Below are positions 834 to 52,024 of a stretch of DNA of 64,000 nucleotides, one piece after another (within the stretch, counting starts at the first letter, position 1; each line of letters begins with the position of its first letter). The DNA is taken from IMG/VR virus record IMGVR_UViG_3300031344_000002, positions 62,001 through 126,000 of that record, one strand, 5' to 3'. A program made the position numbers and the translations under genes. The notes beneath the pieces were generated by a model. It was given only the letters and a program-made list of their open reading frames with translations, made no database searches and was not told the DNA's origin.

Positions 834-3674
834 ATGGCAACACAATTAAATACAAATATAAAAGTTTCTGCACCATTACCAATTGATAAACGATATTTAA
901 GCGAAAGAACTATTGGTGGTAGTCCATTACCATATTCAGCAACAACTGAAGTATTTTCAATAATTCCTTCAAGTGAAAGATATATTGGGTTAACTGTTAA
1001 TATTAATAATGTTGATTATTGGTTTAAAAATAATACAACGAATTTAATATTAAAAACGATTACTGGTTCAACATCAAATATTAATAATGTTACTGGCGGA
1101 ACAAATATTGGATATTTTAGTGGAAAAACTGGTATACAAATGCTTAATTTAAGTGGTGCTGGTTTTGGTATATATGAGGGTGATTATTATTCAGAATATA
1201 ATAATTATTATCGAGATAGTTCAGGATTTGTAAGACTTGGTACACCAACATATCATGGAGCACTTAGACGTGCATATATAAATTCTACAAGAACAGTTTC
1301 TTGGTTATTTGACCAAGGTTTAAATGCATGGCAATTAAGTAATTTTGATATTACTTTATATATTGGAAGTTATGTTCCCATTATTGGATATACAGGTAGT
1401 GGATATACAAATACTACATGGAATGGAAGTAATTATAATGGTTCTGTTTTAGTTACTGCGTATGGTAGTTTAAATACTGGTAATACAATTACAATAGGAA
1501 GTCCAGTTTTTTCAGATAAACAATTTAGTGAACTTAGATTTAAAACATTAAAATCGAAGACACCGAATTTCGTTAATATAAGTAATGATGATAGTTTTAT
1601 ATATTTTTCTGGTTCATCATCATTAATAAAAGGTAAAAATGTTGGTACTGGTATTGGTGTTTATTCTGGTGTAACTGGAAATACTTTACAATTTAAAAGT
1701 ATTCTTGGAACAGGTAGTACTACAGTAATAAATAATGGTGGTACTATTCTCATATCTTCAAGTAATGCAATAACTGGTGCAACCAATGGTTTAACAAAAG
1801 ATAATCTAAATATTAAATTAGGTGGAACATTAACTGGTAATACAGTAATAACTGATAATCGTGTAACGCCTGTTGGTATTCAATATGGCGGAAATTATGC
1901 GCCATATTTTACTTCTCGTTCACTTGTTGATAGGGGTTATGTTGAATCGGTTGCAACTGGACTTATTCCTAAATTAGCAGTAAAAGTTGCAACAATTTCG
2001 GCAATAACATTAAATGGATTAACATTAATTGATGGAATTCCTGTTACTGATGGTGATAGAGTTCTAGTAAAGAATCAATATGATGAAACTAAAAATGGAA
2101 TATATAGTGCAAGTACAAGTACTTGGATTCGTGCAACTGATTTTAATTTTGTACCTACTGGAGAAGTAGCACAAGGTGCAATAATTCCAGTTGTTACTGG
2201 TAATACACAAAAAAATACTCTATGGGTATTGGTCACACCAAATCCAATTATTAGTGGTGTTACATCCTTAACATTTGGATTATTTAATAATCCAATATTA
2301 AATCAAGGTACTGGTATTTTAATTATAGGTAATACTATTTCTGTTGATGGTTCAAGTCTTGCTGGAAATTCAATTAATTGGACTGGTAATACATTTAATG
2401 TTAATATTAATAGTGGAACATTACAAACAGCTTTAAATTCTAAATTAAACACAACAACATTTAATAATTATTCAGGAATTACCGTTCCAACAAATTATTA
2501 TAATAAAACACAAATTAATAATTATACTGGTAAAACCAACACTGTTATAATTAATGCAATTACTGGTGCAACTAATGGTTTGACAAAGCAAGGTAATCAT
2601 GATGTGGTATTGGGTGGTACAATAACGGGCGCAACGACAATTGCTATTAATAGTGGTGGTACTTTAACAATTGTTGATAATCGTACATCAAAAATTGGTA
2701 TACAATATGCTGCAAATTATAATTCTGGATTTACTGATAATTCTCTTATAACTAAAAAATATGTTGATGATAATATAATTAATACAACTGGTGCTACTAT
2801 ATATAATTTAGGTTCACCTGCTGCAATAACTTTAGGTGGAATTGTTTCAGGAACAACATTAACTGGAAAAACTACTAATCAAATACTTGAAGAATTATTA
2901 GTTCCAACATTAAATCCAACATTAATAGCACCTTCAAGTACAATTGCTTTAAATCCATCTGGAACATTTGAGGTTGGTTGTAATATATCAACATTATGTG
3001 TCACAACCGCATTTAATCAAGGTTGTATTTGTCCACAATATTCTGCTATTTGTGATAAAAGAAGTGGTGATGCTAATCATTATTGCTTTACTGGCGCACA
3101 AGTTGCAAATGATTATGCATGTACTTCAACAAGTTTAATAGAATATGCAACAAATTATATTATTTCTGCTGGTACTGCAACTTGGGGTTCATGTGTATTT
3201 TATGATGCAGGTGTTCAACCAAAAAATAGTAAAGGCGGTAATTATTCAACACCACTTTCTTCAAATAATACTGGTGCACAAACAGCTACTTTAACTGGTA
3301 TATATCCATATTTTTATGGCAAATGTACTTGTCCGGGTTCTGCTGGAGCAAATCGTCCCACAGCAACAAGTTCAATGGTTTCTAGTGGTACAAAAATTGT
3401 TGCAAGTTCATCAAGTTCTATTAGTATCAATTTTAATAGTGGTAGTGATGATTATTTGTGGTTTGCATATCCAGCATCAAATACAGATAAAACATGTTGG
3501 TGTATAACTGCACTTAATAATGGTTCTATTGGTGGCGGTATTAGTCCTGCATGTAATTTATTTCCATCATCTAATATAATTAGTGTTACAACAACTTGTT
3601 GGTCAGGACAAAGTTATAAAGTTTATATTAGTAATAAACAAACATGTGTAACTTCATCAATGTTAATAAGTTAA
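834..3674 (+). CDS. Tail fibre-like structural protein (946 aa)
   Basis: T/G/N-rich, with repeated NGLTK.G...LGGT(L/I)TG and SL(V/I)(D/T)K.YV stalk motifs and a VLVKNQ...KNGIY...W.RATD module typical of phage fibres. Confidence 0.7.
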   Translation: MATQLNTNIKVSAPLPIDKRYLSERTIGGSPLPYSATTEVFSIIPSSERYIGLTVNINNVDYWFKNNTTNLILKTITGSTSNINNVTGGTNIGYFSGKTGIQMLNLSGAGFGIYEGDYYSEYNNYYRDSSGFVRLGTPTYHGALRRAYINSTRTVSWLFDQGLNAWQLSNFDITLYIGSYVPIIGYTGSGYTNTTWNGSNYNGSVLVTAYGSLNTGNTITIGSPVFSDKQFSELRFKTLKSKTPNFVNISNDDSFIYFSGSSSLIKGKNVGTGIGVYSGVTGNTLQFKSILGTGSTTVINNGGTILISSSNAITGATNGLTKDNLNIKLGGTLTGNTVITDNRVTPVGIQYGGNYAPYFTSRSLVDRGYVESVATGLIPKLAVKVATISAITLNGLTLIDGIPVTDGDRVLVKNQYDETKNGIYSASTSTWIRATDFNFVPTGEVAQGAIIPVVTGNTQKNTLWVLVTPNPIISGVTSLTFGLFNNPILNQGTGILIIGNTISVDGSSLAGNSINWTGNTFNVNINSGTLQTALNSKLNTTTFNNYSGITVPTNYYNKTQINNYTGKTNTVIINAITGATNGLTKQGNHDVVLGGTITGATTIAINSGGTLTIVDNRTSKIGIQYAANYNSGFTDNSLITKKYVDDNIINTTGATIYNLGSPAAITLGGIVSGTTLTGKTTNQILEELLVPTLNPTLIAPSSTIALNPSGTFEVGCNISTLCVTTAFNQGCICPQYSAICDKRSGDANHYCFTGAQVANDYACTSTSLIEYATNYIISAGTATWGSCVFYDAGVQPKNSKGGNYSTPLSSNNTGAQTATLTGIYPYFYGKCTCPGSAGANRPTATSSMVSSGTKIVASSSSSISINFNSGSDDYLWFAYPASNTDKTCWCITALNNGSIGGGISPACNLFPSSNIISVTTTCWSGQSYKVYISNKQTCVTSSMLIS

Positions 3675-3694
3675 TAAATAAAAAATATAAAAAA

Positions 3695-6091
3695 ATGGCA
3701 ATACAATTAAATGATAATTTAAAGATTAATGTTGGAAATCCAATTGATTCAAGATATTTAAATTCTTGTAATTATCCATATGTGAGTGTTGCAGCAGTTA
3801 ATGCTGGCATTCCTCAATCACAAAGATATAGTGGTTTAACAGTAAATATACTTAATACTGAATATTGGTATCAAACAGGTACTAATGATGGTAATTTGGT
3901 AATTAAAAATGTTGGTAGTACTGGTGGTACAACTGTATGCGCAAATAATGGTTTAACAAAAAATGGTAATATAGTATCGCTAGGTGGAACATTAACAGGT
4001 AATACAACAATATCATTACCCCTCAATTCTCAAAGAAGTTTTACTGTTGGTAATGGCAATACTGCTCATTTTTATGGCGGTTATTTTTCTGTAAAAATAG
4101 ATTGTGTTTTTGCATGTAATAATGGAATATTTTTGGGTGCAAGAAATAGTTCTGGAAGTGGTACTGAAAGTGTAATACAATTAATTCCTTCTGGAATTAC
4201 AATTTGTGGTGTAAATAATAACAATTTTAGCGGTATTAATTATTATTGTGATTATAGCGTAAATTATACTAATCGTTCATTAGTTGACAAAGGTTATGTT
4301 CTTAGTGTAATTTCTGGTAGTACTGGTGGAACCAATATATGTAGTACAGATAAACAAATAATATTTAATAGTTCTAATATTCTTTGCGGTAGTAATAATT
4401 TTACATATAATTGCACAGGTGATTCATTAGCAGTAAATCAATACAGTGGTGCATTAGGCTGTAATTCAGTAGCAATGGCTGGTGGTTATACATATAGTGG
4501 TTATTCAGTAGCAATGGCTGGTAGTCAAACATTTGGTTTTTATTCAGTAGCAATGGCTAGTGGTGCAGCATGTGGTTATAATTCAGTAGCAATGGCACAA
4601 GGTACTGCTTGTGGTGGTGGTTCAGTAGCAATGGCTGGTGGTACTGCATATGCTGATTGTTCAGTAGCAATGGCTTTTGCTGCAGCATGTGGTTATAATT
4701 CAGTAGCAATGGCTGGTGGTACTACATGTGGTTGTATGTCAGTAGCAATGGCTAATGGCAATACAACTACTGGTGGAACAAATTCTGTAGCAATGGCTGG
4801 TGGTTATACTTGTGCTGATTATTCAATAGCAATGGCTAATGGTACTGCTTGTGGTATTAATTCAATAGCAATGGCTAATGGAATTGCATTTAATTGTTAT
4901 TCGGTAGCAATGACTGGTGGTCATACATGTGGTGATAATTCAGTAGCAATTGGTAATGGAAGTATTACATGTGGTTATAATTCAGTAGCAATAATTGGTG
5001 GTATTGCATGTGGCGATAGTTCAGTAGCAATGAATGGTGGTATTACAAATACTGGTGCAACATGTTCAATAGCAATGATTGGTGGCGATACATTTGGTTA
5101 TAATTCAGTAGCAATAATTGGTGGTATTACAAATACTGGTGCAACATGTTCAATAGCAATGATTGGTGGTAATACTTATAGTTGTGGTTCAATAGCAATG
5201 GTTAATGGTTCTACATTTGGTAATAATTCAGTAGCAATGGCTGGCGGTTATACTTGTGGTTGTTATTCAGTAGCAATGGCAGGTAGCTGTGCATATGCTG
5301 ATTTTTCAGTAACAATGGCTGGTGGTGCTGCAAATGGTTGTTGTTCAGTAGCAATGGCAAATGGCACTGCATGGGGATATCTGTCAGTAGCTATAAGTCC
5401 ATTTACATACGCTTATGGCTGTAATTCAGTAGCAATGGCTGGTGGTTATACATATAGTGGTGGAACAAATTCAGTAGCAATGGCTAGTGGTCAAGCATGT
5501 GGTTGTATGTCAGTGGCAATGGTTGGTGGTATTGCATGTGGTCAAAATTCAGTAGCAATGGCTGGTGGTACTACTTGTAGTGGTGGAACAAATTCAGTAG
5601 CGATTGCTGATGGTACTACTTGTGGTTGTAATTCAGTAGCAATGGCTAATGGTGTTACTTGTGGTGATTATTCGATAGCTATGGCACAAGGTACTACTTA
5701 TGGTTGTAATTCAGTAGCAATGGGTGGTGGTCAAGCAGGTGGTGATAATTCAGTAGCAATGGGCGGTTCTGTTGCTGGTGGTAATTATTCAGTAGCAATG
5801 GGTAATGGTGCTGCTAGTGGTATTGGTTCAGTAGGAATGGCTGGTGGTAATGCTTGTGGTTGTTATTCAGTGGCAATGGCTGGTGGTTGTGCAATTATTG
5901 ATTGTTCAATTTCTATGGGTAATTTATTTTGTGGTAATACTACTGGCAATACCGTTACAATAAATAATATATTAAAATTAGCACCAACAACAACACCAGC
6001 AAATCCAACTTTAGGTACAATATTTACTTGTACTGACAATCATTTATATTTTTATAATGGAAGTGCTTGGAAACAATTAGATAATCTATAA
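3695..6091 (+). CDS. Tail fibre/adhesin with about 37 SVAM-type beta-roll repeats (YadA-head-like)
   Basis: Likely start is the ATG at 3695 (MAIQLND, paralogous to MATQLNT at 834). Repeats of x-S-V-A-M-A-x-G occur mostly every 13 aa. Confidence 0.7.
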   Translation: MAIQLNDNLKINVGNPIDSRYLNSCNYPYVSVAAVNAGIPQSQRYSGLTVNILNTEYWYQTGTNDGNLVIKNVGSTGGTTVCANNGLTKNGNIVSLGGTLTGNTTISLPLNSQRSFTVGNGNTAHFYGGYFSVKIDCVFACNNGIFLGARNSSGSGTESVIQLIPSGITICGVNNNNFSGINYYCDYSVNYTNRSLVDKGYVLSVISGSTGGTNICSTDKQIIFNSSNILCGSNNFTYNCTGDSLAVNQYSGALGCNSVAMAGGYTYSGYSVAMAGSQTFGFYSVAMASGAACGYNSVAMAQGTACGGGSVAMAGGTAYADCSVAMAFAAACGYNSVAMAGGTTCGCMSVAMANGNTTTGGTNSVAMAGGYTCADYSIAMANGTACGINSIAMANGIAFNCYSVAMTGGHTCGDNSVAIGNGSITCGYNSVAIIGGIACGDSSVAMNGGITNTGATCSIAMIGGDTFGYNSVAIIGGITNTGATCSIAMIGGNTYSCGSIAMVNGSTFGNNSVAMAGGYTCGCYSVAMAGSCAYADFSVTMAGGAANGCCSVAMANGTAWGYLSVAISPFTYAYGCNSVAMAGGYTYSGGTNSVAMASGQACGCMSVAMVGGIACGQNSVAMAGGTTCSGGTNSVAIADGTTCGCNSVAMANGVTCGDYSIAMAQGTTYGCNSVAMGGGQAGGDNSVAMGGSVAGGNYSVAMGNGAASGIGSVGMAGGNACGCYSVAMAGGCAIIDCSISMGNLFCGNTTGNTVTINNILKLAPTTTPANPTLGTIFTCTDNHLYFYNGSAWKQLDNL
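4457..5920 (+). repeat. Coding tandem repeat array (tcagtagcaatggct core, period 39-45 nt)
   Basis: About 37 in-frame units counted from the translation. An exact 45-nt copy sits at 4457-4501 and 5417-5461. Confidence 0.9.
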
Positions 6092-16153: not shown

Positions 16154-16792
16154 ATGATATTAAAAAAGATAGATTTACTCGAAATAATCGATTCGAATGG
16201 TGAGTTAATTGGTAAAAATGATACGCCTACAAATGGCAGTGATTTAGAAAGTCAAGCTAATAATACTACCGATTATAATGCCAAAATTGGCACACAACCC
16301 TTTAGATATGATATGTTGGGTCGTTTTGGATTTTCCAATTTAAGTTTTACTGAGGGAAAAGAAAATCAAGAACAGAAAGAATTATTAAAAGATTTGGCAG
16401 TACTTGTTCATGAAAAATATATGAAGGATTTACAATATTTTTATAAAAACCCCAATAAATTAAAAAGTGATTATAGAAAAGTTGTTGGTGATAAATTTCA
16501 TTCAGAGGAATGTCAAAAAGCAGATATGGAATGGGCAAAAAAAATAATTAAAATAATGGAACTATATTTCGAAAATGTATTTAAAGAACCAATTGACGAA
16601 ATTAATTCAATTACGGAAAGTAAGGTAGAGGAAGATAAACTCGTCAATAAAAAATCTGAAGATGAAATATCAAAAAAATCTGAAAACCAAGAAATTAAAA
16701 ACAAAAAACTCCAAAAAGTTGCTGGTTTAATCAATAAACTCGATAAAAAAGATATTGATAAACTAATAAATTTATTGGAAAGAAGTAGATAA
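16154..16792 (+). CDS. Hypothetical (putative virion-internal) protein
   Basis: 212-aa charged ORF behind a late motif; contains LLE and ITE motifs. Confidence 0.5.
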   Translation: MILKKIDLLEIIDSNGELIGKNDTPTNGSDLESQANNTTDYNAKIGTQPFRYDMLGRFGFSNLSFTEGKENQEQKELLKDLAVLVHEKYMKDLQYFYKNPNKLKSDYRKVVGDKFHSEECQKADMEWAKKIIKIMELYFENVFKEPIDEINSITESKVEEDKLVNKKSEDEISKKSENQEIKNKKLQKVAGLINKLDKKDIDKLINLLERSR

Positions 16793-17583
16793 TGAATAAT
16801 ATGGCGAATAAAGAATTATATGATAAAACCTATCCTGTGCCTCAAAACATACTTAAAAGTATTGAGGTGGCGAAAGCATCTACTTCAGATAGTAATGGTC
16901 TAAAAAGGGCAAATTTTATACTTAAAAACGGTGTTTTAACATATCAGGCATTAAAAAGATTAAAGAATTTTTTTGATTATTTTAATCCACAAACTCAAAA
17001 TAAAACACAATATGCACTTGCTGGTGGTGATTTAATGAAACGATTTATTGAAACATCGTTAGCGCAAGATAGGGCAGGTGTTGTACGTAGTAAGAAAATT
17101 AAACAGGATATAACCACCAATCCTAATTCGGAATTAAAACCTTATCAAAGACCAAGGTTAAACGAAGAAAGGAAAGAATTAAAAAAAAACGCTGTTGCAG
17201 TAATTGTCAATAATGATAATAAAATTTTATTACTTAAAAGAGCAGATGATAGTAAAATTTGGATGCCAAATAAATGGTCATTGGTTGGTGGTGAAATGAA
17301 AAAAGATGAAACACCACAACAAGCCATTGAGAGAGAAATACTTGAAGAAACTAAATTAGAAATTAAAAAATTTATAAAATCACTTAGTATTCAAAGAAAA
17401 ACTGATAGTATTGAACACGTATTTGCTTGTAGATATACTGGTGAAGAAACAGATGTTAAATTAAATGATGAAAATACAAAGTATGGCTGGTATGATGTTT
17501 CTGAAATGAAATATTTAGATACTGTACCACATTTAATAGAATATATTACACTTGTATTTAAATCATATGAAGATGAAAAATAA
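16792..17583 (+). CDS. Nudix hydrolase with N-terminal helical domain
   Basis: Nudix box GGEMKKDETPQQAIEREILEETKLE; an LNE motif sits at the domain junction. Confidence 0.85.
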   Translation: MNNMANKELYDKTYPVPQNILKSIEVAKASTSDSNGLKRANFILKNGVLTYQALKRLKNFFDYFNPQTQNKTQYALAGGDLMKRFIETSLAQDRAGVVRSKKIKQDITTNPNSELKPYQRPRLNEERKELKKNAVAVIVNNDNKILLLKRADDSKIWMPNKWSLVGGEMKKDETPQQAIEREILEETKLEIKKFIKSLSIQRKTDSIEHVFACRYTGEETDVKLNDENTKYGWYDVSEMKYLDTVPHLIEYITLVFKSYEDEK

Positions 17584-19627: not shown

Positions 19628-19637
19628 TGTATTTATA
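19628..19637 (+). promoter_or_regulatory. Putative late promoter motif TGTATTTATA
   Basis: 19 nt upstream of ATG 19657. Confidence 0.6.
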
Positions 19638-19656
19638 ATCATACTCATATTCAAAA

Positions 19657-22600
19657 ATGACATACGAAGAATTTAAACAAAATTTTTTAGCGGATTTTCT
19701 TAATATAAAATCATTTGCAGGTAGAATACAATATGCTAATGAACATCTATCAAGAATTGGTAGTGGTAGTGGTAGGATTGTGTATGATATTGATGGTCAA
19801 AAAGTATTAAAATTAGCAAAAAATGCTAAAGGTATTGCACAAAATAAAGCAGAAGCTGGTATTGGATATTATGGGGATACGCAACATATTGTTACAATTA
19901 TTTATGATAATGCAGATGATGATAGTTGGTTAATTGCAGAAAAAGCAAAAAAAGTAAACGAAAAAAGAATTAAAGAATTAACGAGTATTCCAAGTCTTAA
20001 TGATTTGTATTATTATTTAAGAAATAATGAATCTGAAAATAAAGGTGGAAGTGGAATTTTTGGACAAAACGAAAATATTAAAAATCAATTAGATAATAAT
20101 GAATTTATCATTGATTTAATAGATTTTGTTGCAAATTATTCAATAAGTGTTGGTGATTTGGGTAGACCAAGTTCTTATGGTGAAGTACTCCGTGATGGTC
20201 AACCAACAATTGTATTAACAGATTATGGATTAAATGATGAAGTATATGATACACATTATAATCCACAAAAAAAGCAAAAATATCGTATGTATGAATTATA
20301 CAATTTTGCTGATGGTAATGATGATATTCTTTCTGATATAGGTAATGTTGGACAAGACCAAAGACATGGAATGTGGGCATTAATGCCATATGGTGTAGGT
20401 GATGGCGATGGTGTAATAAATGAAGAATTTAAAGAATTTATTATAAGAAGAAGCATATATCCAAATAAACCAATAAAGAATATGCCAGAACTTGTAGATA
20501 ATTTTCATGAATGTGTAAATAATCTTAAAGAAACATTAAATCATGTAGATGATAAGAAAAAATTCTATAATAATTTATTGGAACTTCAAAAATATCTTAT
20601 TTCTCAAAATTATTATGATAGAGAACCACTTAGTAGTGAAGAATATGTTATAAATGAAGATATTGAACAACAATCGCCACAAGTTCAAAAATTTACATTA
20701 ACTGATGTAAATTATGCAACTGAAATTGCTAAGACTAGTGCTGAAAAATTAGGGTTTAAAATATTAAAAACAATTGGCGGTGGTTCAAATGGTTTTGCAT
20801 TTGATATTGGCGATACAAAAATTTTTAAACTTTCTGCTGATATTAGTGAAGCAGATGCAGCAACAAAATTAATAAGAGTAAAACCAACACATCTTGCAAT
20901 TGTTTATAATTTATATAAAATAGTGGATACTGAAAAAAATCAGGCATTCTTTGGAATAATCGAACGTCATATAACAGATAAACCACTTCAACAATTTAAT
21001 CGAAACATAGATATTATTAATAGTATTATGCCAAATAATATGTCGATAGTTGATTTTTATATAATGATGAAAAAGAATTTTGATTATAATAATTTAATTA
21101 ATTTAGCAAAAAATATACTTACAGAAAAACCTGAAGTAAATATTTCAAATATAGAAAGACAACAAGCATATGATTGGATGATAGGATTGTTCGAAATTAA
21201 AAAAGAATTATTGAGTTATAATATTAAATCAGATGATTATGGTAATCCAGAAAATCTTGGATATGAGGGGGGTATTTTAAAATTCTTTGATTTTGGTGGT
21301 TATCGAGGTGTTAATGAACCTGATTTGGGAGATGCAAATATTATATTTTTACCTGAAAACGAAGAAATATTAGATGAAAAATATAATAGAAATATTGCAG
21401 ATAATATAGCCAATCAAATTGCAAAAACAAAAGGATATAATGAACCAAAATATGTAGATGCTGGTGAATATGGTGTTGCTTATGATATTGGTGATGATAA
21501 AATTTTAAAAATAACTGCAGATAATAGTGAAGCAGCAGAAAATTTAAAACTTATAAATAAACCATTAAAATATATAGCACAACCATATAATGTATTTACA
21601 ATCGATTCAAAAAATACATATATTTCTAAAACATATGCAATTGTTTTGGAAAAATTAAAAACAGACCCACAAAAATTTAAAAGACTTAAAGAAAGAATTG
21701 ATTTTATTTTTGGAAAAATATTTAATCTCAGACTTTATGATATTATTGATTATTATATAAATGGATATGGGGACATAGATACAAAAAAAATTGATGGATA
21801 TATGTCAAAAAATCCAGAAGATGCTGAATTTTTTTATTCTATATTAAGAATTGCTGAAGAAGCAAAACAATATGGAGTTGAAAGTTTGGATTATTTTAAT
21901 TATACTAATTTAGGATATAAAAAAAATGGAGTAATTGCATTTTTTGATGTGGGATTTAGTAATGGTTACTTACAACCGAATGGTGCAGAAAATATAAAAA
22001 TAACTGAAGATGGAACTTCAAAATTCTCAACACCAAATAGTATTGGACAAGATAATTTTCCACCATATGAAAATAATGATACATCTCCAGTTACAGATAA
22101 TAACGTACCAACAACTCCAGAAAGTGTAAAAGAAGATTTAGAATATCATCATGTTGTAGGTGATGCAACACAAGATAAATTTGCTCTTGATGAAATTGGA
22201 AAAAAATCATTTATGAAGGGAGCACAAGCTGTTACAGTAAAAAAGAAATGTAGATTAGGTGGTTTGGGAAATACAAGTGTAGCTTGTAATCAAGGTGATA
22301 TTAATAATCTTGATATTAAAACAATTAATGAAAATAATAATATTGATTTATTAAAATTGCAATTAGCACAAGCAGCACAAAAAGTTTATAATGAATGGGA
22401 ACAAGATGAAAATGGTATGGATTGTACATTAGGTTCTGGTGGTATATGTCAAGATATTGCTGGTGCAATGTGTGATATATTAATAAATAATAATATTGAA
22501 TGTACAACAGTATCTCAGCAAATTGGTGACCAACATGTTTATGTTGTCGCTCAAACAGACGATGGTATATATGATATAGATATTTCACCATATTTATATG

Positions 22601-25600
22601 AAGAAGGTAGTGGTTATTGTTGGAAAAAAATACCTGATGTTGAATTTAATGAAAGATATATTAATATAAATAAAATAAGTTCAGACCCTAATGATTATGA
22701 AAAATATATAATTAATGAAAATTATAATAAAAAAATTAATGAACAATCAATTAATGAAACAAATTTACCGCATAATAAAACTTTTTGGGCATGGGTGTCA
22801 CCAGATAATAAATTCACTGAAGTATCTAAACTTCAACATGCAGGATTTATTGAAGGAAAATATCCTGAACTATCATATGATTTAGATGCGTTATTTTATC
22901 AAGCATTTAGAGAAGGTTGGGTACGAGTAATTTATGAATATAACTCAGACAGATTTATGGGTACTTTATCTATGAATGGATTTGATAAAGAAAGAGTTAA
23001 ATCAGTATTTAAGGACATGTTTTTTGATTTAATTAAATATGGAAATAATATAATTTATTTAGATTATGAAGTTGGTGGTAATGCTGATATAATAAGAACA
23101 GGTAATGCGGAAGGAAAAGCAAAATTGGTGAATTATGTAAATGAACAATCAATTAAAGATTTTGAAAAACAAATTGAAAAAGATAATAAAGATGATAAAT
23201 TAGATAAACTTCTTTTATTTGAAGAAGATGACTATAAAGTATATGCAGTTAATGGTAAATATGTAAGAAGTAAAAATCCGGGACTGAATTTTGATGAATG
23301 GGTTGATGGCGGTCATCATTATGTTGATTTAGACCTACCAAAAAAAGAACAAAAATACGCTAAACATATTCCAGAAGATGAAATTTGGGTTGATGATGTA
23401 TTCATTATAAAACCTGATGATTTAGGCGCAATATTATTACATGAAACACTTGAAAGACATTTAATGAAATACTATGGTTTGAAATATAGTAATGATGGCG
23501 AAGGTAAAGATGGTGCTCATGAAATTGCAAATAAAGCAGAAGTAGAATTTAGAGAAAGAGTAAAAAATGGTTTTGGTCGTGATGTTAGTGAAGAAATTTA
23601 TACTAAATTTGTAAAAAATTATACAAAGAAACATCCAAAAAAGAAATTAAAAATTAATGAAGAAAATTATGTTGGAAAAGCATATAGAGTGAATTCTAAT
23701 TTCATTCAATCTAAAGGAACTACTGCAGGTGATGTTGTTAGATTTGAAATGAAAGAATTAGGTAATGTTGATGATTTTAATATAACTCCTGAAAAATTAA
23801 AAGAACTTGATAAATATCCAGCTAAAGATATTGTCTGGATTACAAAAACATTTGAGGATGCAAAAAGATATTCTAATGAAGATGACTTTTCAGATATCGA
23901 TGAATTTGATATTAATAATGGCGAAATTATTGGTGAAGATGGTGATGGTGGATATCTTATTTTAATTAAAAAACATAATTTAAATGAATCAATAATGATT
24001 GAAGATGATTCTCAATCAAATAATAAAATTACTGGTTTTGTAAATAATTTAAAACAAAAACCATTTATTCAATCACTTATAAATGGTTTAAAATCAGATG
24101 TTTATGTTGTTGGAGGGGCTGTTCGTGACCTTATTCTTAATAAACCAAACAAAGATATTGATTTGGTTGTAGGAAAAGTACCTATAGATACATTAATTTC
24201 ACAATTACAAAAATTTGGTAAAGTTGATGTTGTTGGTAAATCATTTGGTGTTATTAAATTTATTGATAAAGATGGTACTGACTATGATATAGCATTACCA
24301 AGGGTTGATAGAAAAAATGACGAAGGTGGTTATCGTGGCTTTGATGTTCAAAGTGATGAAAATCTCCCAATTGAAGATGAACTTATTAGAAGAGATGCAC
24401 GTTTCAATGCTATGGCAATTAATATCAATACTGGTAAATTTATTGACCCTTTAGGTGGATTAGATGATATTAAAAAGAAACAAATATCTGCAGCAAATCC
24501 TGATGCGTTTTCAGACGACCCATTAAGAGCATTAAGATTTTGTTCGTTTGCTAGTCGTTTTGGTTTCACAATTGAACCACAAACGATGCAAATGATTAAA
24601 GATAATGCGAGTAGAATTAAAGAAATTCCGCCAGAAAGAATATTAATTGAATTTGATAAAATTTTAAAAAAAGGCGACAAACGTATTGGTATACAACTGC
24701 TTAAAGACACTGGTTTATTTCAACAAATTTTTAATTTTGATTTAAAACAATCAACAATTGATAGAAGTCCATTTGAAGAAGTTAAAACAATGGGTGAGTT
24801 TATTTATTTATTAACACGATTATTACCAAATCCTGCAGAATTTTATAAAAATAATTTAAAAGGTGATATTGATACTTATAAGGAAATTAAAGCACTTGAA
24901 ATGGCATTTGATAGTGGTGAAGCAACTAATTTAATTGAAGCACGAACAGTTGCGCATAATATGTATGTAACATCACCACAATCACTTCAAAGCCAAATAA
25001 TACCTAGTGTAATTGAAACCGCAGCACAAGAATTATTACAAGGCAAATATCCAAAAGCAGTTGGTGAACTAGCAATTAATGGCAATGATTTAATTCAATT
25101 TGGATTAAAAGGTAAAGAGATTGGTGATATGTTAAAATCATTATTGTTAAAGGTATATTCAAATAATGTTAGGAATAATCGAGATGATTTATTAAATTTG
25201 ACAAGTCAAAAAAATAAATCAATAAAACAAGAAGGTGTTGCAGATAAATATGCAGAAAAAACTTTTAATGTTCCTGACTCAAATACTGCAATGGATGTTA
25301 AAGCAATGGGTGGTATAGAAAAAAATAAAGAAAAACCATATGCAATTAGTGAAGAGGGTGATTTATTTTTTAAGAACCCAAAATCATTAACAAATTTTGA
25401 TAAAAATGTTAGGGCAATTGCTGATAGTGATGGAAACTTATTTGTTGCACAAGTAAATGGTAATTTTCTTCATGGAGATATTGCAAGAACATTAGGAATT
25501 GTTGGATGGATATATGAAAATAATGATTATGTGTTGTTACATAGAGCAGGAAACACAAATAATTTTGGATTGAGTGATAGTAATTATAATGATATTAGAA

Positions 25601-26610
25601 ATTTTAAAGATATACGTGAAAGTGCAATACAAATATTAAATAAAACAAAAAAAAGAAATCCACAATATAATTTTTACCTTAAATATTTTAACAATATAGA
25701 TGATGATAGTATGCCTATTGATAATATAGGTCTTAATGAAAATATTGATGGTCAACATAAAACAATTACTGAAGAATATCATGAAGTTGGTGATGGTAAA
25801 TATGTAGTAAATAATAAAATTGTTGATATTAATTTCTTTGTTAATGAATATAATAAATGGAATACTGAAAGTGGAAGAGGAAGAGCAGAATATTCAGACC
25901 CAAATGAAGCATCAGTATTAGAATTTTTACAAAATAATTATGAAGATTTTAGCCATAATGAAAAATTAAAACATAAATTATTATGGAAACTTACAGATAA
26001 TGACGTTTTAAATGAAACACCAATTGATTCAATAACTTCAGATAATATAATAACACCGCAATATATAAAAGATGTAGAACGTAGTGATAATTATGAAAGA
26101 TATATTGAATATTATAAATATGAAAATAATTTGGAGGATGAAGATAAGGAAGTTATTGAACAAAATGAAGATTTTAAAAAATGGTTTATATGGGAATTAA
26201 AAAATAAATATGATGATGTAATAGATAAAATAAAAGAGAAAATAAAACCAAATGATACTATTGATATTTGGAGAGAAATGACAGTTGATGATAATTGGAT
26301 TTATCATATTGGTACACAAGGAAAACATTTAGGTATTTATTGGTCTTGGGAAGAAAATGCTGCTGAAGCACATTGGGGAGATAGTAAAAAATATAATAAA
26401 GCAATAATAAAAACATCTGTGAAAGAAGACAATATTGATTGGACTAATACAATATATGCTAATATGGATTTGGCTCTTGGCGAAGATGAAAAAGAAATAA
26501 CATTATTTAAAAATACATCATTAAAAATTGAAGAATTATATATAAATGGTGAAGATATTATGGATTCTCCGCAAGCAATACCAATTAAAAATAAAATATT
26601 TTATGCTTAA
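19657..26610 (+). CDS. Giant polyvalent multi-enzyme protein: three kinase-like domains, Cys-His-Asp domain, zincin, two ART-like domains, CCA-adding/poly(A) polymerase-family nucleotidyltransferase
   Basis: Kinases: GSGSGRIVY/VLKL/DYG, GGGSNGFAF/IFKL/DFG, DAGEYGVAY/ILKI/DVG. Other motifs: GICQD...HVYV...DID; HETLERH; GGAVRD..DID..RRD..FNA..DDPLR; WR..YWS..EDEKE. Confidence 0.8.
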   Translation: MTYEEFKQNFLADFLNIKSFAGRIQYANEHLSRIGSGSGRIVYDIDGQKVLKLAKNAKGIAQNKAEAGIGYYGDTQHIVTIIYDNADDDSWLIAEKAKKVNEKRIKELTSIPSLNDLYYYLRNNESENKGGSGIFGQNENIKNQLDNNEFIIDLIDFVANYSISVGDLGRPSSYGEVLRDGQPTIVLTDYGLNDEVYDTHYNPQKKQKYRMYELYNFADGNDDILSDIGNVGQDQRHGMWALMPYGVGDGDGVINEEFKEFIIRRSIYPNKPIKNMPELVDNFHECVNNLKETLNHVDDKKKFYNNLLELQKYLISQNYYDREPLSSEEYVINEDIEQQSPQVQKFTLTDVNYATEIAKTSAEKLGFKILKTIGGGSNGFAFDIGDTKIFKLSADISEADAATKLIRVKPTHLAIVYNLYKIVDTEKNQAFFGIIERHITDKPLQQFNRNIDIINSIMPNNMSIVDFYIMMKKNFDYNNLINLAKNILTEKPEVNISNIERQQAYDWMIGLFEIKKELLSYNIKSDDYGNPENLGYEGGILKFFDFGGYRGVNEPDLGDANIIFLPENEEILDEKYNRNIADNIANQIAKTKGYNEPKYVDAGEYGVAYDIGDDKILKITADNSEAAENLKLINKPLKYIAQPYNVFTIDSKNTYISKTYAIVLEKLKTDPQKFKRLKERIDFIFGKIFNLRLYDIIDYYINGYGDIDTKKIDGYMSKNPEDAEFFYSILRIAEEAKQYGVESLDYFNYTNLGYKKNGVIAFFDVGFSNGYLQPNGAENIKITEDGTSKFSTPNSIGQDNFPPYENNDTSPVTDNNVPTTPESVKEDLEYHHVVGDATQDKFALDEIGKKSFMKGAQAVTVKKKCRLGGLGNTSVACNQGDINNLDIKTINENNNIDLLKLQLAQAAQKVYNEWEQDENGMDCTLGSGGICQDIAGAMCDILINNNIECTTVSQQIGDQHVYVVAQTDDGIYDIDISPYLYEEGSGYCWKKIPDVEFNERYININKISSDPNDYEKYIINENYNKKINEQSINETNLPHNKTFWAWVSPDNKFTEVSKLQHAGFIEGKYPELSYDLDALFYQAFREGWVRVIYEYNSDRFMGTLSMNGFDKERVKSVFKDMFFDLIKYGNNIIYLDYEVGGNADIIRTGNAEGKAKLVNYVNEQSIKDFEKQIEKDNKDDKLDKLLLFEEDDYKVYAVNGKYVRSKNPGLNFDEWVDGGHHYVDLDLPKKEQKYAKHIPEDEIWVDDVFIIKPDDLGAILLHETLERHLMKYYGLKYSNDGEGKDGAHEIANKAEVEFRERVKNGFGRDVSEEIYTKFVKNYTKKHPKKKLKINEENYVGKAYRVNSNFIQSKGTTAGDVVRFEMKELGNVDDFNITPEKLKELDKYPAKDIVWITKTFEDAKRYSNEDDFSDIDEFDINNGEIIGEDGDGGYLILIKKHNLNESIMIEDDSQSNNKITGFVNNLKQKPFIQSLINGLKSDVYVVGGAVRDLILNKPNKDIDLVVGKVPIDTLISQLQKFGKVDVVGKSFGVIKFIDKDGTDYDIALPRVDRKNDEGGYRGFDVQSDENLPIEDELIRRDARFNAMAININTGKFIDPLGGLDDIKKKQISAANPDAFSDDPLRALRFCSFASRFGFTIEPQTMQMIKDNASRIKEIPPERILIEFDKILKKGDKRIGIQLLKDTGLFQQIFNFDLKQSTIDRSPFEEVKTMGEFIYLLTRLLPNPAEFYKNNLKGDIDTYKEIKALEMAFDSGEATNLIEARTVAHNMYVTSPQSLQSQIIPSVIETAAQELLQGKYPKAVGELAINGNDLIQFGLKGKEIGDMLKSLLLKVYSNNVRNNRDDLLNLTSQKNKSIKQEGVADKYAEKTFNVPDSNTAMDVKAMGGIEKNKEKPYAISEEGDLFFKNPKSLTNFDKNVRAIADSDGNLFVAQVNGNFLHGDIARTLGIVGWIYENNDYVLLHRAGNTNNFGLSDSNYNDIRNFKDIRESAIQILNKTKKRNPQYNFYLKYFNNIDDDSMPIDNIGLNENIDGQHKTITEEYHEVGDGKYVVNNKIVDINFFVNEYNKWNTESGRGRAEYSDPNEASVLEFLQNNYEDFSHNEKLKHKLLWKLTDNDVLNETPIDSITSDNIITPQYIKDVERSDNYERYIEYYKYENNLEDEDKEVIEQNEDFKKWFIWELKNKYDDVIDKIKEKIKPNDTIDIWREMTVDDNWIYHIGTQGKHLGIYWSWEENAAEAHWGDSKKYNKAIIKTSVKEDNIDWTNTIYANMDLALGEDEKEITLFKNTSLKIEELYINGEDIMDSPQAIPIKNKIFYA

Positions 26611-26688: not shown

Positions 26689-27558
26689 GTGTTAGATATT
26701 AATGTAATTAAAAATAAAAGAATTTTTAAATTAACAAAAGATGAATTAAATTATTTGTATCGTGATTTAAATATGTCACAAACTGATATTGGAAAATTAC
26801 TTAATACTGATTCAAGTAATGTTTCAAGAAAATTTAAAAAAGAAAGCATAATTGCAGATAAAGGAAATGAATATATTTCAAAAAAACAATTACAAACACA
26901 AATTGAATTAACTAAAGAAATTTTAGTAATTGAATATCCAAACAATTCAATTACTAAAATAGCAAAAAAATTTGGTGTTAGCTATTCTTTTATTTATAAA
27001 AAATTAAATGAATTTGATATTCCAATACAAAAAAATGGTTATTTTCAAACAAAATATATTGATAATATAACATATGATACATTATTTGATTTATATTGGA
27101 ATAAAAAATTAAGTTTGTTTGAAATAGGTACAATATTTTGTGCTGATAAAAATTTAATTAAAAGAAGATTAAAAGAATTTAAAATAAAAATTAGAACAAA
27201 AAAAGAGGCATTTAATTTAGTTGAATATAAAAAGAAGAAAAGTGAAATTATAAAATCTATAATTGGAAATGAGTTCAAACCAGTTTATAATAAAGAATCA
27301 ATTCCAATAATTGAAGAATTTGGTAAAAAAATGGGATATAATTTTATTCATGCCGAAAATGGTGGTGAACATTTAATAGATGAATTATTTTATTGGGTGG
27401 ATGGATATGATTATGATAAAAATGTTGTTGTTGAATATTACGAAAAGGCACATAAATATAAAAAAGAATATGATAGAAATAGAATTTCAAGAATTAAACA
27501 ATTTTTAGAATGTAAAATTTTTATAATTTATGAAAATGGAATAATAGAAGAAAAATAA
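26689..27558 (+). CDS. Putative homing endonuclease (tandem HTH modules plus C-terminal PD-(D/E)xK/Vsr-like nuclease)
   Basis: Three HTH-like repeats (SQTDIGKLL, SITKIAKKFGVS, SLFEIGTIF) followed by NGGE...YWVDGYD...VVEYYE..H. Confidence 0.6.
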   Translation: MLDINVIKNKRIFKLTKDELNYLYRDLNMSQTDIGKLLNTDSSNVSRKFKKESIIADKGNEYISKKQLQTQIELTKEILVIEYPNNSITKIAKKFGVSYSFIYKKLNEFDIPIQKNGYFQTKYIDNITYDTLFDLYWNKKLSLFEIGTIFCADKNLIKRRLKEFKIKIRTKKEAFNLVEYKKKKSEIIKSIIGNEFKPVYNKESIPIIEEFGKKMGYNFIHAENGGEHLIDELFYWVDGYDYDKNVVVEYYEKAHKYKKEYDRNRISRIKQFLECKIFIIYENGIIEEK

Positions 27559-27569
27559 AATAATAAAAA

Positions 27570-27953
27570 ATGAATAATATATCTTATAGTGCAGTCGTTC
27601 TTGATGATAGGTCAAAACAAAGACTTATTGAACGATTTAAAACAATTATTCCAGAAGGATTCGAAATTGTTGCGCATCACATGACTATTAACATGGGTGA
27701 AATCGACCCAAAACTTGAAAAATATCTAGGATTGCCAGTACGATTAAGTGTTAATGAATTTGCTATAGATGATAAAGTAATGGCTGTGGGGGTTAGCGGT
27801 TTTGAAACACACAACGCTAAAGCACATATTACATTAGCTGTAAATCGAGCAAATGGTGGTAAACCAATGATGTCAAATAAATTAACTAATTGGCAACCAT
27901 TAAAAAGACCATTATATATAACAGGTAAAGTAATAGAAGTGGAATTTAAGTAA
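27570..27953 (+). CDS. 2H phosphoesterase (tRNA-ligase cyclic phosphodiesterase-like)
   Basis: Two HxT motifs, AHHMTI and AHITLA, plus YSAVVLD and GKPMMSN. Confidence 0.75.
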   Translation: MNNISYSAVVLDDRSKQRLIERFKTIIPEGFEIVAHHMTINMGEIDPKLEKYLGLPVRLSVNEFAIDDKVMAVGVSGFETHNAKAHITLAVNRANGGKPMMSNKLTNWQPLKRPLYITGKVIEVEFK

Positions 27954-27954
27954 C

Positions 27955-28458
27955 ATGGCTGATTGGAAAGAATCATCAAGAATGGGTTTTGAATTTGAAG
28001 ATTTTTGTTTAAAAGATTTAAATGAAAAATTATTTCCTCTTGCATATAAAAATATGAAAAAAGAAGAGTATAGTTATTATGATATTATACTTTTTAATGG
28101 TAAATTTGCAGAAAAACAAAAAACAATTGAATGTAAGTTTGATAAAATGGGTAGTGTTAGTGGTAACATTTGTATTGAAACTGGATGTTGGGGGAGGCAA
28201 TCAGGATTATTAATTACAAAAGCTGATTATTGGATTATTGGTGATGGTATTATAACATATATTGCTAAAACAAAAAGAATACATGATTGTATTGTTGAAA
28301 ATATAAATCAAATCGAGTATAAGAAAAAAACAAAAATTGAACAAAAGAAAGGTATTTTTAAAGAAATGGATATGTATATTATTCCAAAAAGATTCTTTGA
28401 ACCTTATTGTGAAGAAATTAATAATATTAATGAAATGAAATATAATTGTTTATTATGA
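27955..28458 (+). CDS. PD-(D/E)xK-family nuclease-like protein
   Basis: GFEFE...YDIIL...TIECKFD...GNICIE...SG...TKADYW. Confidence 0.6.
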   Translation: MADWKESSRMGFEFEDFCLKDLNEKLFPLAYKNMKKEEYSYYDIILFNGKFAEKQKTIECKFDKMGSVSGNICIETGCWGRQSGLLITKADYWIIGDGIITYIAKTKRIHDCIVENINQIEYKKKTKIEQKKGIFKEMDMYIIPKRFFEPYCEEINNINEMKYNCLL

Positions 28459-28462
28459 TTAA

Positions 28463-29050
28463 ATGTATTTAGAAATGGAAAATAATATTAAAAGATTAAT
28501 TATCAGTGACTTAGATGGAACTTTGATTAATTCACCAATGCCAGAAACAGGTAAAGTTCAATGGTCTGAGAAAATGAAAACGCCATATAAATATCAAGGT
28601 TGGTGGGGTCGTCCAGAAAGTTTGGATTTAAACGTTTTTGATATTAAACCATTTTCAAGTGTATTGAATCAATTAAAAGAAGAACAGGCAAAGCCAAATA
28701 CTTATGTAATAATACTTACATCAAGAATGGAAAAACTACGTCCACAAGTTCAAGCAATACTTGATGCAAATCATATTGTTGTTGATAAACTTGATATGAA
28801 ACGTGCAGAAGGAGATAAAGGAAAGAAAGTTTTGAGATATGTGGAGCAATTTCCAGAATTGGAAGAAATAAATGTTTACGATGATAGAGATACAGACATT
28901 CAATCTTATGTAGCAATTAAAAATCAAATTCCAAAAAGTATTAGATTTAATATATATTTAGCAAAAGAAGGTAAATTATCTTTATTAGAAAATAGATTTA
29001 CATTATTAAATATTATTCGTGAAGAAATTCAAAATATTTTAAAAAATTAA
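28463..29050 (+). CDS. HAD-family phosphatase, RNA-repair (Swiss Army Knife HAD/Pnkp-like) type
   Basis: DLDGTL (motif I), NSP..., GWW, LTSR (motif II), K, YDDR (motif IV). Confidence 0.75.
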   Translation: MYLEMENNIKRLIISDLDGTLINSPMPETGKVQWSEKMKTPYKYQGWWGRPESLDLNVFDIKPFSSVLNQLKEEQAKPNTYVIILTSRMEKLRPQVQAILDANHIVVDKLDMKRAEGDKGKKVLRYVEQFPELEEINVYDDRDTDIQSYVAIKNQIPKSIRFNIYLAKEGKLSLLENRFTLLNIIREEIQNILKN

Positions 29051-50959: not shown

Positions 50960-52024
50960 ATGAATAATTATCGTGGTCAAGAATTTTATAGTATAATTCA
51001 AAATATATTCGGTGACGTTCATGGAACTGGACCACAATTTCAGGTAGAATGTCCTATCTGTCAAGATAATAAATTTAATCTTGAAATAAATACGGCAAAA
51101 GGTAAGGGCATATTTAAATGTTGGTCGTGCCAGTCACCACCCTTCAGTGGTTCACTTTCTAAACTAATTTATTTATACGGGTCCAAATCAGACTATGCAC
51201 TCTATAAGTCATATGCAAGTATTTATAGTAATTATTCATATGAAAATAATAATGATGAACAAGAATATGTACAGGTTAAACTTCCAAGTGAAATGATATT
51301 ATTTTCTAAAATTGAAGAAGGAAATCCTGAACATTTTGAAGCATATAATTATCTTATTAATGAAAGAAAAATAAGTCGAGAACTTTTTTTAAAATATCGG
51401 TTTGGTTTTTGTACCACTGGAAAATATGCCAAGAGAATAATAGTCCCGTCTTATGATATGACTGGTGATGTGAATTATTTTATTTCACGTAGTTATGATT
51501 CAAAAGAAAAAAGAAAATATTTAAATCCTGTTGCAGATAAAAATAAAATCATTTTTAATGAAGGTTTTATTAATTGGGACTCAACCGTTTTTTTATGTGA
51601 AGGTGTTTTTGATGCATTTTCATTACCCAATGCAATTCCATTATTAGGAAAAACATTATCAATAACACTTTTTAATAAACTAAATGAATTAAAACCAAAT
51701 ATAATTGTTTTATTAGACCCTGACGCAATAAAAAATGCAATAAATTTATATCAAACATTACATACTATTTATGTTGGTTGTGAAGATAGAATTAGAATTG
51801 TCGAATTACCAATAAAAGAAGATATCGATAGACTTAGAAAAGATTATGGAATTGAAAAAGTAATTGAAACGCTGTATACTGCAAGAAAACTAAATAATAA
51901 TGATTGTTTTATAAATAAATTAACTAAACCTTATGATAATAGCAGTAGAGCAGGAAAAGGAAGATATGATTCTTATTCAAAATACTTTGAATGGAAATCC
52001 ACAAGCGCAAGAAAAACTATATAA
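50960..52024 (+). CDS. DNA primase (DnaG-type, Zn finger plus TOPRIM)
   Basis: CPIC...KCWSC, EGVFDA and LLDPDA. Confidence 0.88.
   Translation: MNNYRGQEFYSIIQNIFGDVHGTGPQFQVECPICQDNKFNLEINTAKGKGIFKCWSCQSPPFSGSLSKLIYLYGSKSDYALYKSYASIYSNYSYENNNDEQEYVQVKLPSEMILFSKIEEGNPEHFEAYNYLINERKISRELFLKYRFGFCTTGKYAKRIIVPSYDMTGDVNYFISRSYDSKEKRKYLNPVADKNKIIFNEGFINWDSTVFLCEGVFDAFSLPNAIPLLGKTLSITLFNKLNELKPNIIVLLDPDAIKNAINLYQTLHTIYVGCEDRIRIVELPIKEDIDRLRKDYGIEKVIETLYTARKLNNNDCFINKLTKPYDNSSRAGKGRYDSYSKYFEWKSTSARKTI

Follow-up and report, generated by a model that had tools for sequence, protein, structure and literature searches.

How is a phage protein made of about 13 mutually unrelated modules organized, and what marks the limits of its modules? 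The question is raised by an open reading frame (ORF) of the IMG/VR virus record IMGVR_UViG_3300031344_000002, of which we analysed positions 62,001 to 126,000 (64,000 nucleotides, hereafter the window). The ORF encodes a putative polyprotein that had been described from the sequence alone, in what we call the sequence-only reading, as a chain of enzymes punctuated by I/L/V-x-E motifs, which would be packaged in the capsid, cut at these motifs by a prohead protease and injected into the host. The limits (19657-26610) and length (2317 amino acids) given in that reading were exact, and so were all its motif coordinates: V331-E334 (20647), I571-E574 (21367), T889-E892 (22321), the tandem E1021/E1029/E1034, and E1163, E1335, E1444, IKQE1859, E2028, TITEE2039 and E2120. 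From the analysis reported here we consider it practically certain that the protein is built of modules separated by delimiters and, judging from the pattern of the sites, probable that the chain undergoes proteolysis at the L/I/V-x-E sites of its junctions. Towards the complete scenario, in which a polyvalent cargo polyprotein would be loaded into the prohead, cut by a protease of the T4 gp21 type and ejected, we lean with some reserve.

Module boundaries in a family of giant phage proteins

A search of 5.8 billion proteins recovered 136 relatives of 1300-2900 residues, and nine related loci were present in IMG/VR. For the constant block described below, 2151 cluster-level relatives were counted at E ≤ 0.001 and 215 at the stricter threshold of E ≤ 1e-30. 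Unless otherwise stated, counts of junctions and modules refer to 120 giant homologs. In these homologs the first ~890 residues (kinase-like domains, helical module and two-Cys module) are constant and the module related to CCA-adding enzymes is nearly so. The other modules are variable, being gained or lost, re-ordered, and duplicated up to five times, with homology breakpoints near residues 256, 334, 574, 892, 1021-1034, 1163, 1335, 1444, 1859, 2028 and 2120 of the polyprotein. The ~13 modules of the polyprotein are mutually unrelated, with an hhalign probability of at most 6% for any pair. Homologs of the family also carry ART-PolyVal, GNAT, NleE-like methyltransferase, Acb1-like/2H phosphoesterase and tRNA-ligase cyclic phosphodiesterase (CPD) modules; the family as a whole thus combines modules for the modification of host proteins, the destruction of signals and the repair of RNA. 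The sequence-only reading had raised the possibility that related phages encode the same modules in shuffled order or as separate genes, and both were found: the former in the 120 homologs, the latter in the gene fissions and standalone homologs described below.

Across the family, the boundaries of these modules coincide with the L/I/V-x-E tripeptide. At the end of the constant block, located by its fixed offset from an invariant Asp, position P1 is Glu in 113 of 115 homologs and P3 is Ile, Leu or Val, likewise in 113 of 115. P2 is occupied by various residues (N 47, K 29, D 19, T 7 ...), P1' is variable, and unrelated modules follow straight after the Glu. The CCA module invariably comes after [MLI]-N-E and before [ILM]-[KNQ]-E. 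When the homologs were compared all against all, 60% of ~40,000 internal ends of high-scoring segment pairs (HSPs) fell within 5 residues of the Glu of an [ILVM]xE motif, compared with 24% for random positions. The control motifs [ILVM]xD and [ILVM]xK and the phiKZ-type motif [AGST]xE showed no enrichment at HSP ends (0.7-1.0x).

The structure of the polyprotein was predicted with AlphaFold2 (AF2) in two halves from homolog alignments, confidence being expressed as the predicted local distance difference test (pLDDT). Low-confidence stretches separate confidently predicted domains at 328-338, 568-573, 784-857, 888-894, 1020-1035, 1328-1353, 1438-1452, 1853-1868, 2023-2043 and 2116-2135, and coincide with the motif positions of the sequence-only reading. 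The polyprotein contains 14 copies of [ILV]NE (3.4 +/- 1.8 expected), a number reached in 0 of 2000 shuffles; the remaining ORFs of the window, taken together, show a mild excess (31 vs 19.7), and the 120 large homologs contain 776 copies where 284 are expected. The proposal that the motifs lie in linkers holds for 11 of these 14 copies, which are located in 10-residue blocks with a mean pLDDT below 70; such blocks account for 27% of the protein's length (binomial P = 7.5e-5). At the DNA level, the junctions have only AAT GAA in common and the P3 codons vary, which points to selection at the level of the peptide.

Leaders ending in the same motif on standalone homologs

Modules of the polyprotein also occur as independent genes. 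Standalone homologs of the C-terminal module (M12; Table 1) form more than 100 clusters of proteins of ~200-220 amino acids without any Pfam domain. These proteins have N-terminal leaders of 12-17 residues that are basic and amphipathic and end in [ILM]-x-E; in 37 of 46 cases, the Glu is at most one residue away from the position that corresponds to E2120. More generally, standalone homologs of M12, M7 and the kinase-like unit carry leaders of 12-18 residues with [ILM]-x-E where the domain begins. For M7 and the kinase-like unit, such leaders also open the chains of more distant giant relatives, and the internal copies are preceded by the motif. Since a leader has no domain upstream, a role of the motif as inter-domain linker fails to account for it, whereas a cleavable propeptide does.

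One standalone M12 homolog (P0136), encoded by a contig of a T4-like marine myovirus, is located 4-9 kb from a Peptidase_S77 gene (6.4e-15) and a gene for a Gp23-family capsid protein. Four [ILVM]xE sites occur within the first 60 residues of the capsid protein, the following 300 residues being free of them, and the scaffold-like protein encoded next to it has 23; this is the textbook pattern of gp21 substrates. A tblastn search of cultured phages with a standalone M12 homolog gave no match, and the neighbourhoods of such homologs on jumbo-phage contigs were uninformative. The gp21-family protease encoded near P0136 is itself split by an intein (L014:391-2241, Intein_splicing/Hint between the two Peptidase_S77 halves).

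Two genes close to the polyprotein gene encode proteins with comparable leaders, conserved in six of six syntenic relatives (Table 1), and the second of them sits downstream of ORF 17639, which bears the upstream motif described below. Based on these leaders, the products of both genes are candidate head-internal proteins that may be packaged together with the polyprotein. A capsid-targeting peptide common to the N-terminus of the polyprotein and other ORFs of the window was looked for and none was found.

Identity of the modules

The limits of the modules are given in Table 1. Foldseek was run on the two half-models; the matches were dominated by kinases and CCA enzymes, and the small modules were without informative matches. 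The presence of three protein-kinase-like domains (K1-K3), announced by the sequence-only reading, is confirmed by structure prediction and conserved catalytic residues. This is a fold-level assignment that extends to neither protein nor small-molecule substrates. These short, truncated paralogous domains have the bilobal kinase fold with a conserved Gly loop, Lys, Glu and Asp, and show Foldseek probabilities of 0.97-1.0 to TYK2, ULK1, IRAK4, JNK3 and APH(2''), as well as similarity to phage protein kinases; no kinase match was obtained with Pfam in the polyprotein. K1 is modelled with a pLDDT of ~90 over residues 1-204 and conserves the G-loop, Lys52, Glu66, Asp167 and Asp189; K2 is lacking in about one third of the homologs; K3 conserves the Gly loop, Lys618, Glu625, Asn751 and Asp764. 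The three domains fit the truncated kinase of the polyvalent proteins described by Iyer et al. The helical module between K1 and K2 is missing from some homologs, with breakpoints at 256-258 and 325-335.

Residues 784-892 are predicted to be disordered and are nevertheless strongly conserved; they are the most universally kept part of the family (117/120 homologs). In the two-Cys module at the end of this region, K862, C865, G869, C877, N878, G880, D881 and E892 are invariant in 43 sequences. The region could be a targeting or docking element.

The Cys-His-Asp domain of the sequence-only reading (M5) is plausible as a hydrolase of papain/transglutaminase-like topology: in the model, Cys931 is at the N-terminus of a helix and His960 and Asp973/975 are on the next two strands. 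These residues are conserved in only four sequences, the confidence of the model is moderate (pLDDT 40-75), and a phmmer search of PDB sequences returned nothing meaningful. The same search was equally negative for M7 and M12. M7 carries a conserved His/Glu pair of helices and occurs in 28 of the 120 homologs. It had been taken for a zincin because the polyprotein reads H-E-x-x-x-x-H at this position, a label that did not survive comparison: the HExxH motif of zincins is absent, the second His is not conserved, the pattern kept over the 28 homologs is H-E-x-x-E with a later A-H-x-x-A-N-x-x-E, and no Pfam, PDB-sequence or Foldseek match was obtained at E ≤ 0.001.

The module assigned to the CCA/poly(A) polymerase family (M9) is recognized by Pfam (PolyA_pol, 1.3e-21; PolyA_pol_RNAbd, 5.9e-18), PHROG 2244 (2e-57), NCBIfam PRK13299 (aligned over 22-394 of 396) and Foldseek (1miv, TM 0.77 across 422 columns), and the translation contains the signature GGAVRD...DID. 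M9 is thus confirmed as a complete class II enzyme of this family with head, neck, body and tail; because its score is below the NCBIfam equivalog cut-offs, it may be specific for the addition of either CCA or A.

The two domains proposed to resemble ADP-ribosyltransferases (ARTs), M8 and M12, found no backing: neither has a Pfam or PDB match, and both are unrelated to the genuine ART-PolyVal module of the family (hhalign ≤4%). M12 does show, on predicted strands, a conserved aromatic-Arg, Ser and E-x-E, and might still be an ART. M8 occurs at varied positions in 14 homologs (45-77% identity), and its structural model is unreliable; a second alignment of the C-terminal half, which included fragments of modules, brought no improvement because MAFFT misplaced them. 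M6, M10 and M11 have confidently predicted folds without assigned function; M6 is present at differing positions in 27 homologs, M10 in up to five paralogous copies per homolog, and M11 in 79 of the 120 homologs. No polyvalent-specific domain of Pfam was detected in the polyprotein itself. The polyprotein proposed by the sequence-only reading is therefore retained as a chain of modules delimited by gp21-type L/I/V-x-E sites, on account of the homolog junctions, fissions and leaders, while its zincin and its two ART-like labels are left unsupported.

Table 1. Modules of the polyprotein and associated features (positions in the window)
Feature	Position	Strand	Description
Promoter-like motif TGTATTTATAAT	19628..19639	+	27 nt upstream of the polyprotein ATG; candidate late promoter
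Polyprotein ORF	19657..26610	+	ATG start; 2317 aa; 265.6 kDa; uninterrupted
K1	19657..20424	+	aa 1-256; kinase-like domain 1 (1-204) and disordered loop; ends VINE256
Helical module	20425..20658	+	aa 257-334; helices 256-316; ends VINE334
K2	20659..21378	+	aa 335-574; kinase-like domain 2 (339-567), pLDDT >90; ends ILDE574
K3	21379..22005	+	aa 575-783; kinase-like domain 3; pLDDT >90
Disordered conserved stretch and two-Cys module	22006..22332	+	aa 784-892; contains SVKE826 and ALDE846; ends TINE892
M5	22333..22719	+	aa 893-1021; candidate papain/transglutaminase-like Cys-His-Asp domain; ends IINE1021
Two spacer peptides (8 and 5 aa)	22720..22758	+	between tandem sites E1021/E1029/E1034; pLDDT <50
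M6	22759..23145	+	aa 1035-1163; alpha/beta domain, function unassigned; pLDDT >90; ends YVNE1163
M7	23146..23661	+	aa 1164-1335; HExxE...AHxxANxxE conserved; pLDDT 83-95; ends KINE1335
M8	23662..23988	+	aa 1336-1444; function unassigned; ends NLNE1444
M9	23989..25233	+	aa 1445-1859; class II CCA-adding tRNA nucleotidyltransferase; ends IKQE1859
M10	25234..25740	+	aa 1860-2028; function unassigned; pLDDT 71-92; ends GLNE2028
M11	25741..26016	+	aa 2029-2120; small domain, TITEE2039 near start; ends VLNE2120
M12	26017..26607	+	aa 2121-2317; function unassigned
Neighbour gene, 212 aa	16154..16792	+	10-residue leader ending [LI]-x-E in 6/6 syntenic relatives; has the upstream motif of the polyprotein
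Neighbour gene, 316 aa	17932..18882	+	~21-residue leader ending [LI]-x-E (at about residue 22), then GVGE; 6/6 relatives

Fission and fusion of modules

In four relatives that are 90% identical (L002-L005), the polyprotein gene is split, and the first ORF of L002 ends in ...KKIN*, a stop codon replacing the Glu of the junction. In L006, L007 and L008, the CCA module opens its own ORF and the upstream ORF stops a few residues past I-N-E or I-D-E. Genes encoding LAGLIDADG homing endonucleases are inserted at module junctions in two of these loci (L002:13489-14493, minus strand; L008:2342-3157, between the two ORFs). These natural gene fissions at junctions show that the modules work apart. The window also contains a free gene (27570-27953, 127 amino acids) for a tRNA-ligase-type cyclic phosphodiesterase of the 2H type (4.5e-5), the counterpart of which is the C-terminal module of the polyprotein in L008 (L008:3141-6080). 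Modules therefore fuse and split in both directions.

In a 326-kb relative (L011), the polyprotein gene is followed, after a single ORF of 61 amino acids, by a gene of 532 amino acids with a weak match to the anti-restriction domain ArdC-N (L011:15110-16708), i.e., a typical domain of polyvalent proteins is encoded there as a separate gene.

Genomic context and candidate late promoter

The window has a base composition of ~26% G+C, and nearly every gene is on the + strand. The polyprotein gene is flanked on one side by a replication block (SNF2-type helicase, family B DNA polymerase, NUDIX protein) and on the other by a T4-like baseplate block (a gp25-like gene and a gp6-like wedge gene); this order, with the baseplate module adjoining, is kept in distant relatives. 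Nucleotide similarity searches against deposited phages matched nothing, protein similarity searches against them matched the CCA module alone, and the DNA polymerase shows at best 25% identity to that of any deposited phage. Relatives of the polyprotein are carried on contigs of 200-366 kb, from which we conclude that the phage belongs to an uncultivated jumbo-phage lineage. An alternative genetic code or a chimeric assembly was rejected as an origin of the giant ORF, which is unbroken under code 11 and has more than 100 collinear relatives.

As noted in the sequence-only reading, the polyprotein gene is preceded by an upstream motif, which was found on the + strand 27 nt before the ATG and is common to 13 other ORFs. 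The motif, (A/T)GTATTTATA(A/T), lies 19-31 nt ahead of the start codons of these 14 ORFs. Among them are the polyprotein ORF, the gp25/gp6 baseplate operon (34441) and, downstream, four genes that are presumably structural; the motif is missing ahead of the helicase, DNA polymerase, primase and SbcCD genes. It is thus a reasonable inference from motif placement that the polyprotein may be expressed late, from an element shared with the baseplate operon. A sigma-70-family factor of 203 amino acids is encoded in the window (51933-52544; Sigma70_r2, 4.5e-10; r4, 6.8e-7) and is a candidate for the recognition of this motif.

Several other genes of the region belong to the theme of RNA repair that surrounds the CCA module. 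A HAD_SAK_1 protein of the 'Swiss Army Knife' RNA-repair type is encoded downstream (28463-29050), a NUDIX protein upstream (16792-17583), and a HAD_SAK_2 gene is present ~30 kb further on (L019). The ORF 27955-28458 (167 amino acids) contains two sites (vs 0.19 expected), an L-N-E at residues 22-24 and an I-N-E at nine residues from its C-terminus; its N-terminal site is not kept in more distant relatives. An HNH/HTH endonuclease-like ORF directly follows the polyprotein (26689-27558). Positions 4001-6000 of the window stand out by 37.5% G+C and a strong GC skew, vs ~26% elsewhere; they lie in an ORF of 815 amino acids (3644-6091) without PHROG match, preceded by an ORF of 946 amino acids with an Ig-like 'head decoration/tail fibre' domain.

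Proposed processing of the polyprotein and alternative explanations

The scenario that we favour for this jumbo myovirus with T4-like baseplate genes can be described as follows. The polyprotein gene would be transcribed late, from the same type of promoter as the baseplate operon, and the chain would be incorporated into the prohead. A prohead protease of the T4 gp21 type (assemblin fold, Glu-specific) would then cut after each exposed L/I/V-x-E, giving products of ~10-47 kDa together with small spacer peptides. We infer that these products would be ejected with the DNA and act immediately on proteins and RNAs of the host. Phosphorylation and the repair of tRNA 3' ends would be among their predicted activities, to which relatives would add ADP-ribosylation, acetylation and the destruction of cyclic-nucleotide signals; the biochemical targets named here are deduced from the modules.

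Several observations weigh against this scenario. The polyprotein itself has no N-terminal leader (residues 3-30 form confidently predicted helices of the first domain and no site occurs early), which leaves its supposed targeting to the prohead without an explanation. Genes for a prohead protease, scaffold and major capsid protein were not found within the 64-kb window and ~45 kb of flanks, and a walk upstream and downstream along the 276-kb contig met replication, lysis and RNA-repair genes and no head genes; a gp21-type enzyme in this phage is thus assumed. Other neighbours of the polyprotein gene (PolB, NUDIX, HAD_SAK and 2H CPD genes) would fit a cytoplasmic role too. Three of the 14 [ILV]NE copies (E102, E554, E2064) and 36 of the 60 [ILVM]xE copies are within folded regions; the tripeptide alone therefore cannot define a junction or a cleavage site. 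Finally, the scenario is proposed for an uncultivated lineage.

The motif could also have a meaning other than cleavage. The chain might stay intact, like N4 vRNAP or P1 DarB, with [ILV]-x-E serving as a linker or docking element (helix caps, scaffold-binding). Giant phage proteins that are packaged uncleaved do exist, N4 vRNAP being an example (PMC5512222), which also counts against the favoured scenario; such a view agrees with the many motif copies inside folded domains. However, a strict P1 Glu with a hydrophobic P3 and free P2 and P1' is the pattern of a protease site, the tandem sites flank spacers of only 5-8 residues, the same motif ends the leaders of standalone homologs, and the gene fissions point to separate functions of the modules. 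We consider an uncleaved chain unlikely, although it is the alternative that we take most seriously. The junctions could even be scars of recombination or fusion at the DNA level without function in the protein, since ATT AAT GAA contains the stop/start signals TAATGA, the junction codons are nearly always AAT GAA in this AT-rich genome, and the modules are often fused, split and re-ordered. This explanation seems very improbable to us: Glu is invariant across homologs whereas P2 varies and P3 codons differ, nothing is common to the junctions beyond two codons, and the enrichment is specific to a hydrophobic P3 with Glu, the Asp and Lys controls being flat.

If the chain is cut, the protease might be other than that of the prohead, or act elsewhere. 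In a late polyprotein that is never packaged, a Glu-specific protease of phage or host would cut in the cytoplasm and the products would serve RNA repair and host takeover. The absence of a targeting leader and the neighbouring replication and RNA-repair genes (PolB, NUDIX, HAD_SAK_1, tRNA_lig_CPD) speak for this possibility, as does the fact that CCA-adding enzymes of phages are ordinarily free cytoplasmic proteins. Yet the known phage proteases specific for L/I-x-E work within proheads (PMC9026906), the baseplate operon has the same promoter motif, and the standalone leaders resemble capsid-targeting propeptides and adjoin head genes, and we regard a cytoplasmic polyprotein as a little less likely still than an uncleaved one. 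Somewhat lower again do we place processing by an embedded peptidase (M5 and/or M7) without the prohead protease. This is the published model, proposed by Iyer et al. for polyvalent proteins that bear an MPTase (PMC5512222), and it would agree with the papain/transglutaminase-like Cys-His-Asp arrangement of M5 and the conserved His/Glu helix pair of M7. However, of the 120 homologs no more than 11 possess M5 and 28 possess M7, whereas the junction motif is universal; M7 lacks HExxH and any peptidase match; and leader-bearing standalone homologs are encoded by phages with a gp21-type protease but without M5 and M7.

Relation to known systems and implications

Polyvalent proteins of phages and conjugative elements combine 2-15 disparate domains in one polypeptide (Iyer, Burroughs, Anand, de Souza, Aravind 2017; PMC5512222). 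Such proteins, including those with the truncated kinase, were predicted to be packaged and processed, in explicit analogy with the polyproteins of RNA viruses, and embedded peptidases (MPTase), or assemblin-like domains at a few C-termini, were proposed as the agents of processing (PMC5512222). The polyprotein studied here resembles them by its disparate catalytic domains, the shuffled architectures of its family, its truncated Ser/Thr/Tyr-kinase-like domains and a putative late-gene/virion context, to which the late-type promoter motif and the baseplate neighbourhood are indirect pointers; ART-PolyVal, GNAT and 2H modules are shared too, but are found in its relatives. It differs from polyvalent proteins as published in that most members of the family have no embedded peptidase and that a T4-type L/I/V-x-E is located at every module boundary. 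No cleavage-site grammar is described for the published set, in which neither a CCA-adding module nor this combination of domains is listed (PMC5512222).

In T4, L/I-X-E is cut by gp21 behind the Glu, and variable internal proteins are loaded into the heads by means of capsid-targeting sequence (CTS) propeptides of 10 residues; Alt is trimmed at both ends, and the cargo is ejected against host defences (PMC9026906). The likeness to T4 IPI-III and Alt lies in the same tripeptide and in the short leaders of standalone module homologs, which are found beside S77 and Gp23 genes. The T4 proteins are encoded by separate small genes with one leader each, whereas here ~13 units are joined in one 266-kDa chain with sites as inter-module delimiters and without a leader. 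In the jumbo phages phiKZ, 201phi2-1 and SPN3US, inner head proteins are cut after Glu by the gp21-related gp175/gp245 (MEROPS S80), with multiple redundant sites per propeptide and the motif S/A/G-X-E or A-X-E (PMC10052503, PMC5694885). Glu sites in a jumbo phage, putative ones here, are common to both; unlike at phiKZ-type sites, [AGST]xE is not enriched at the junctions of the polyprotein, and phiKZ-type cleavage removes N-terminal propeptides and separates no chain of enzymes. The phage 'Swiss Army Knife' and tRNA-repair proteins offer a parallel for the CCA-adding module and for the 2H/LigT, tRNA_lig_CPD and HAD_SAK domains of relatives and adjacent genes; the repair enzymes are mixed here with kinase-like and counter-defence modules, with putative protease sites between them.

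In RNA viruses, several enzymes are released from one polyprotein by 3C-like proteases, which recognize short conserved sites and often cut behind Glu or Gln. There the protease is embedded, the domains are unrelated to those of our polyprotein, and the genomes are not those of double-stranded DNA phages. Polyvalent proteins, their truncated kinase, their likely packaging, the analogy with polyproteins, CTS/gp21 processing in T4 and processing of the phiKZ type are all published. The literature that we searched contains no description of polyvalent proteins regularly punctuated by prohead-protease sites, nor of leader-bearing standalone cargo genes that interchange with modules of a polyprotein.

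The maturation of polyvalent proteins has been an open question since their first description, self-cleavage having been put forward although most members of the present family have no embedded peptidase. A T4-type site at each module boundary provides a concrete and directly testable mechanism, which joins the field of capsid targeting and gp21 in T4 with that of polyvalent effectors. The junction rule allows giant phage proteins from metagenomes to be cut into functional units, and M6, M7, M8, M10, M11 and M12 become candidates for new enzymes of counter-defence or host takeover. The complete CCA-adding module suggests that tRNA 3'-end repair may arrive ready-made at injection. More broadly, and here we stop just short of an even expectation, a cargo grammar may be widespread in T4-related and jumbo phages, in which a short peptide ending in L/I/V-x-Glu would direct loading into the head and release by the prohead protease, and modules would interchange between standalone and concatenated genes. 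If this is true, the protease site would be a universal plug-and-play delimiter and would provide a sequence rule for recognizing hundreds of injected anti-defence enzymes in metagenomes.

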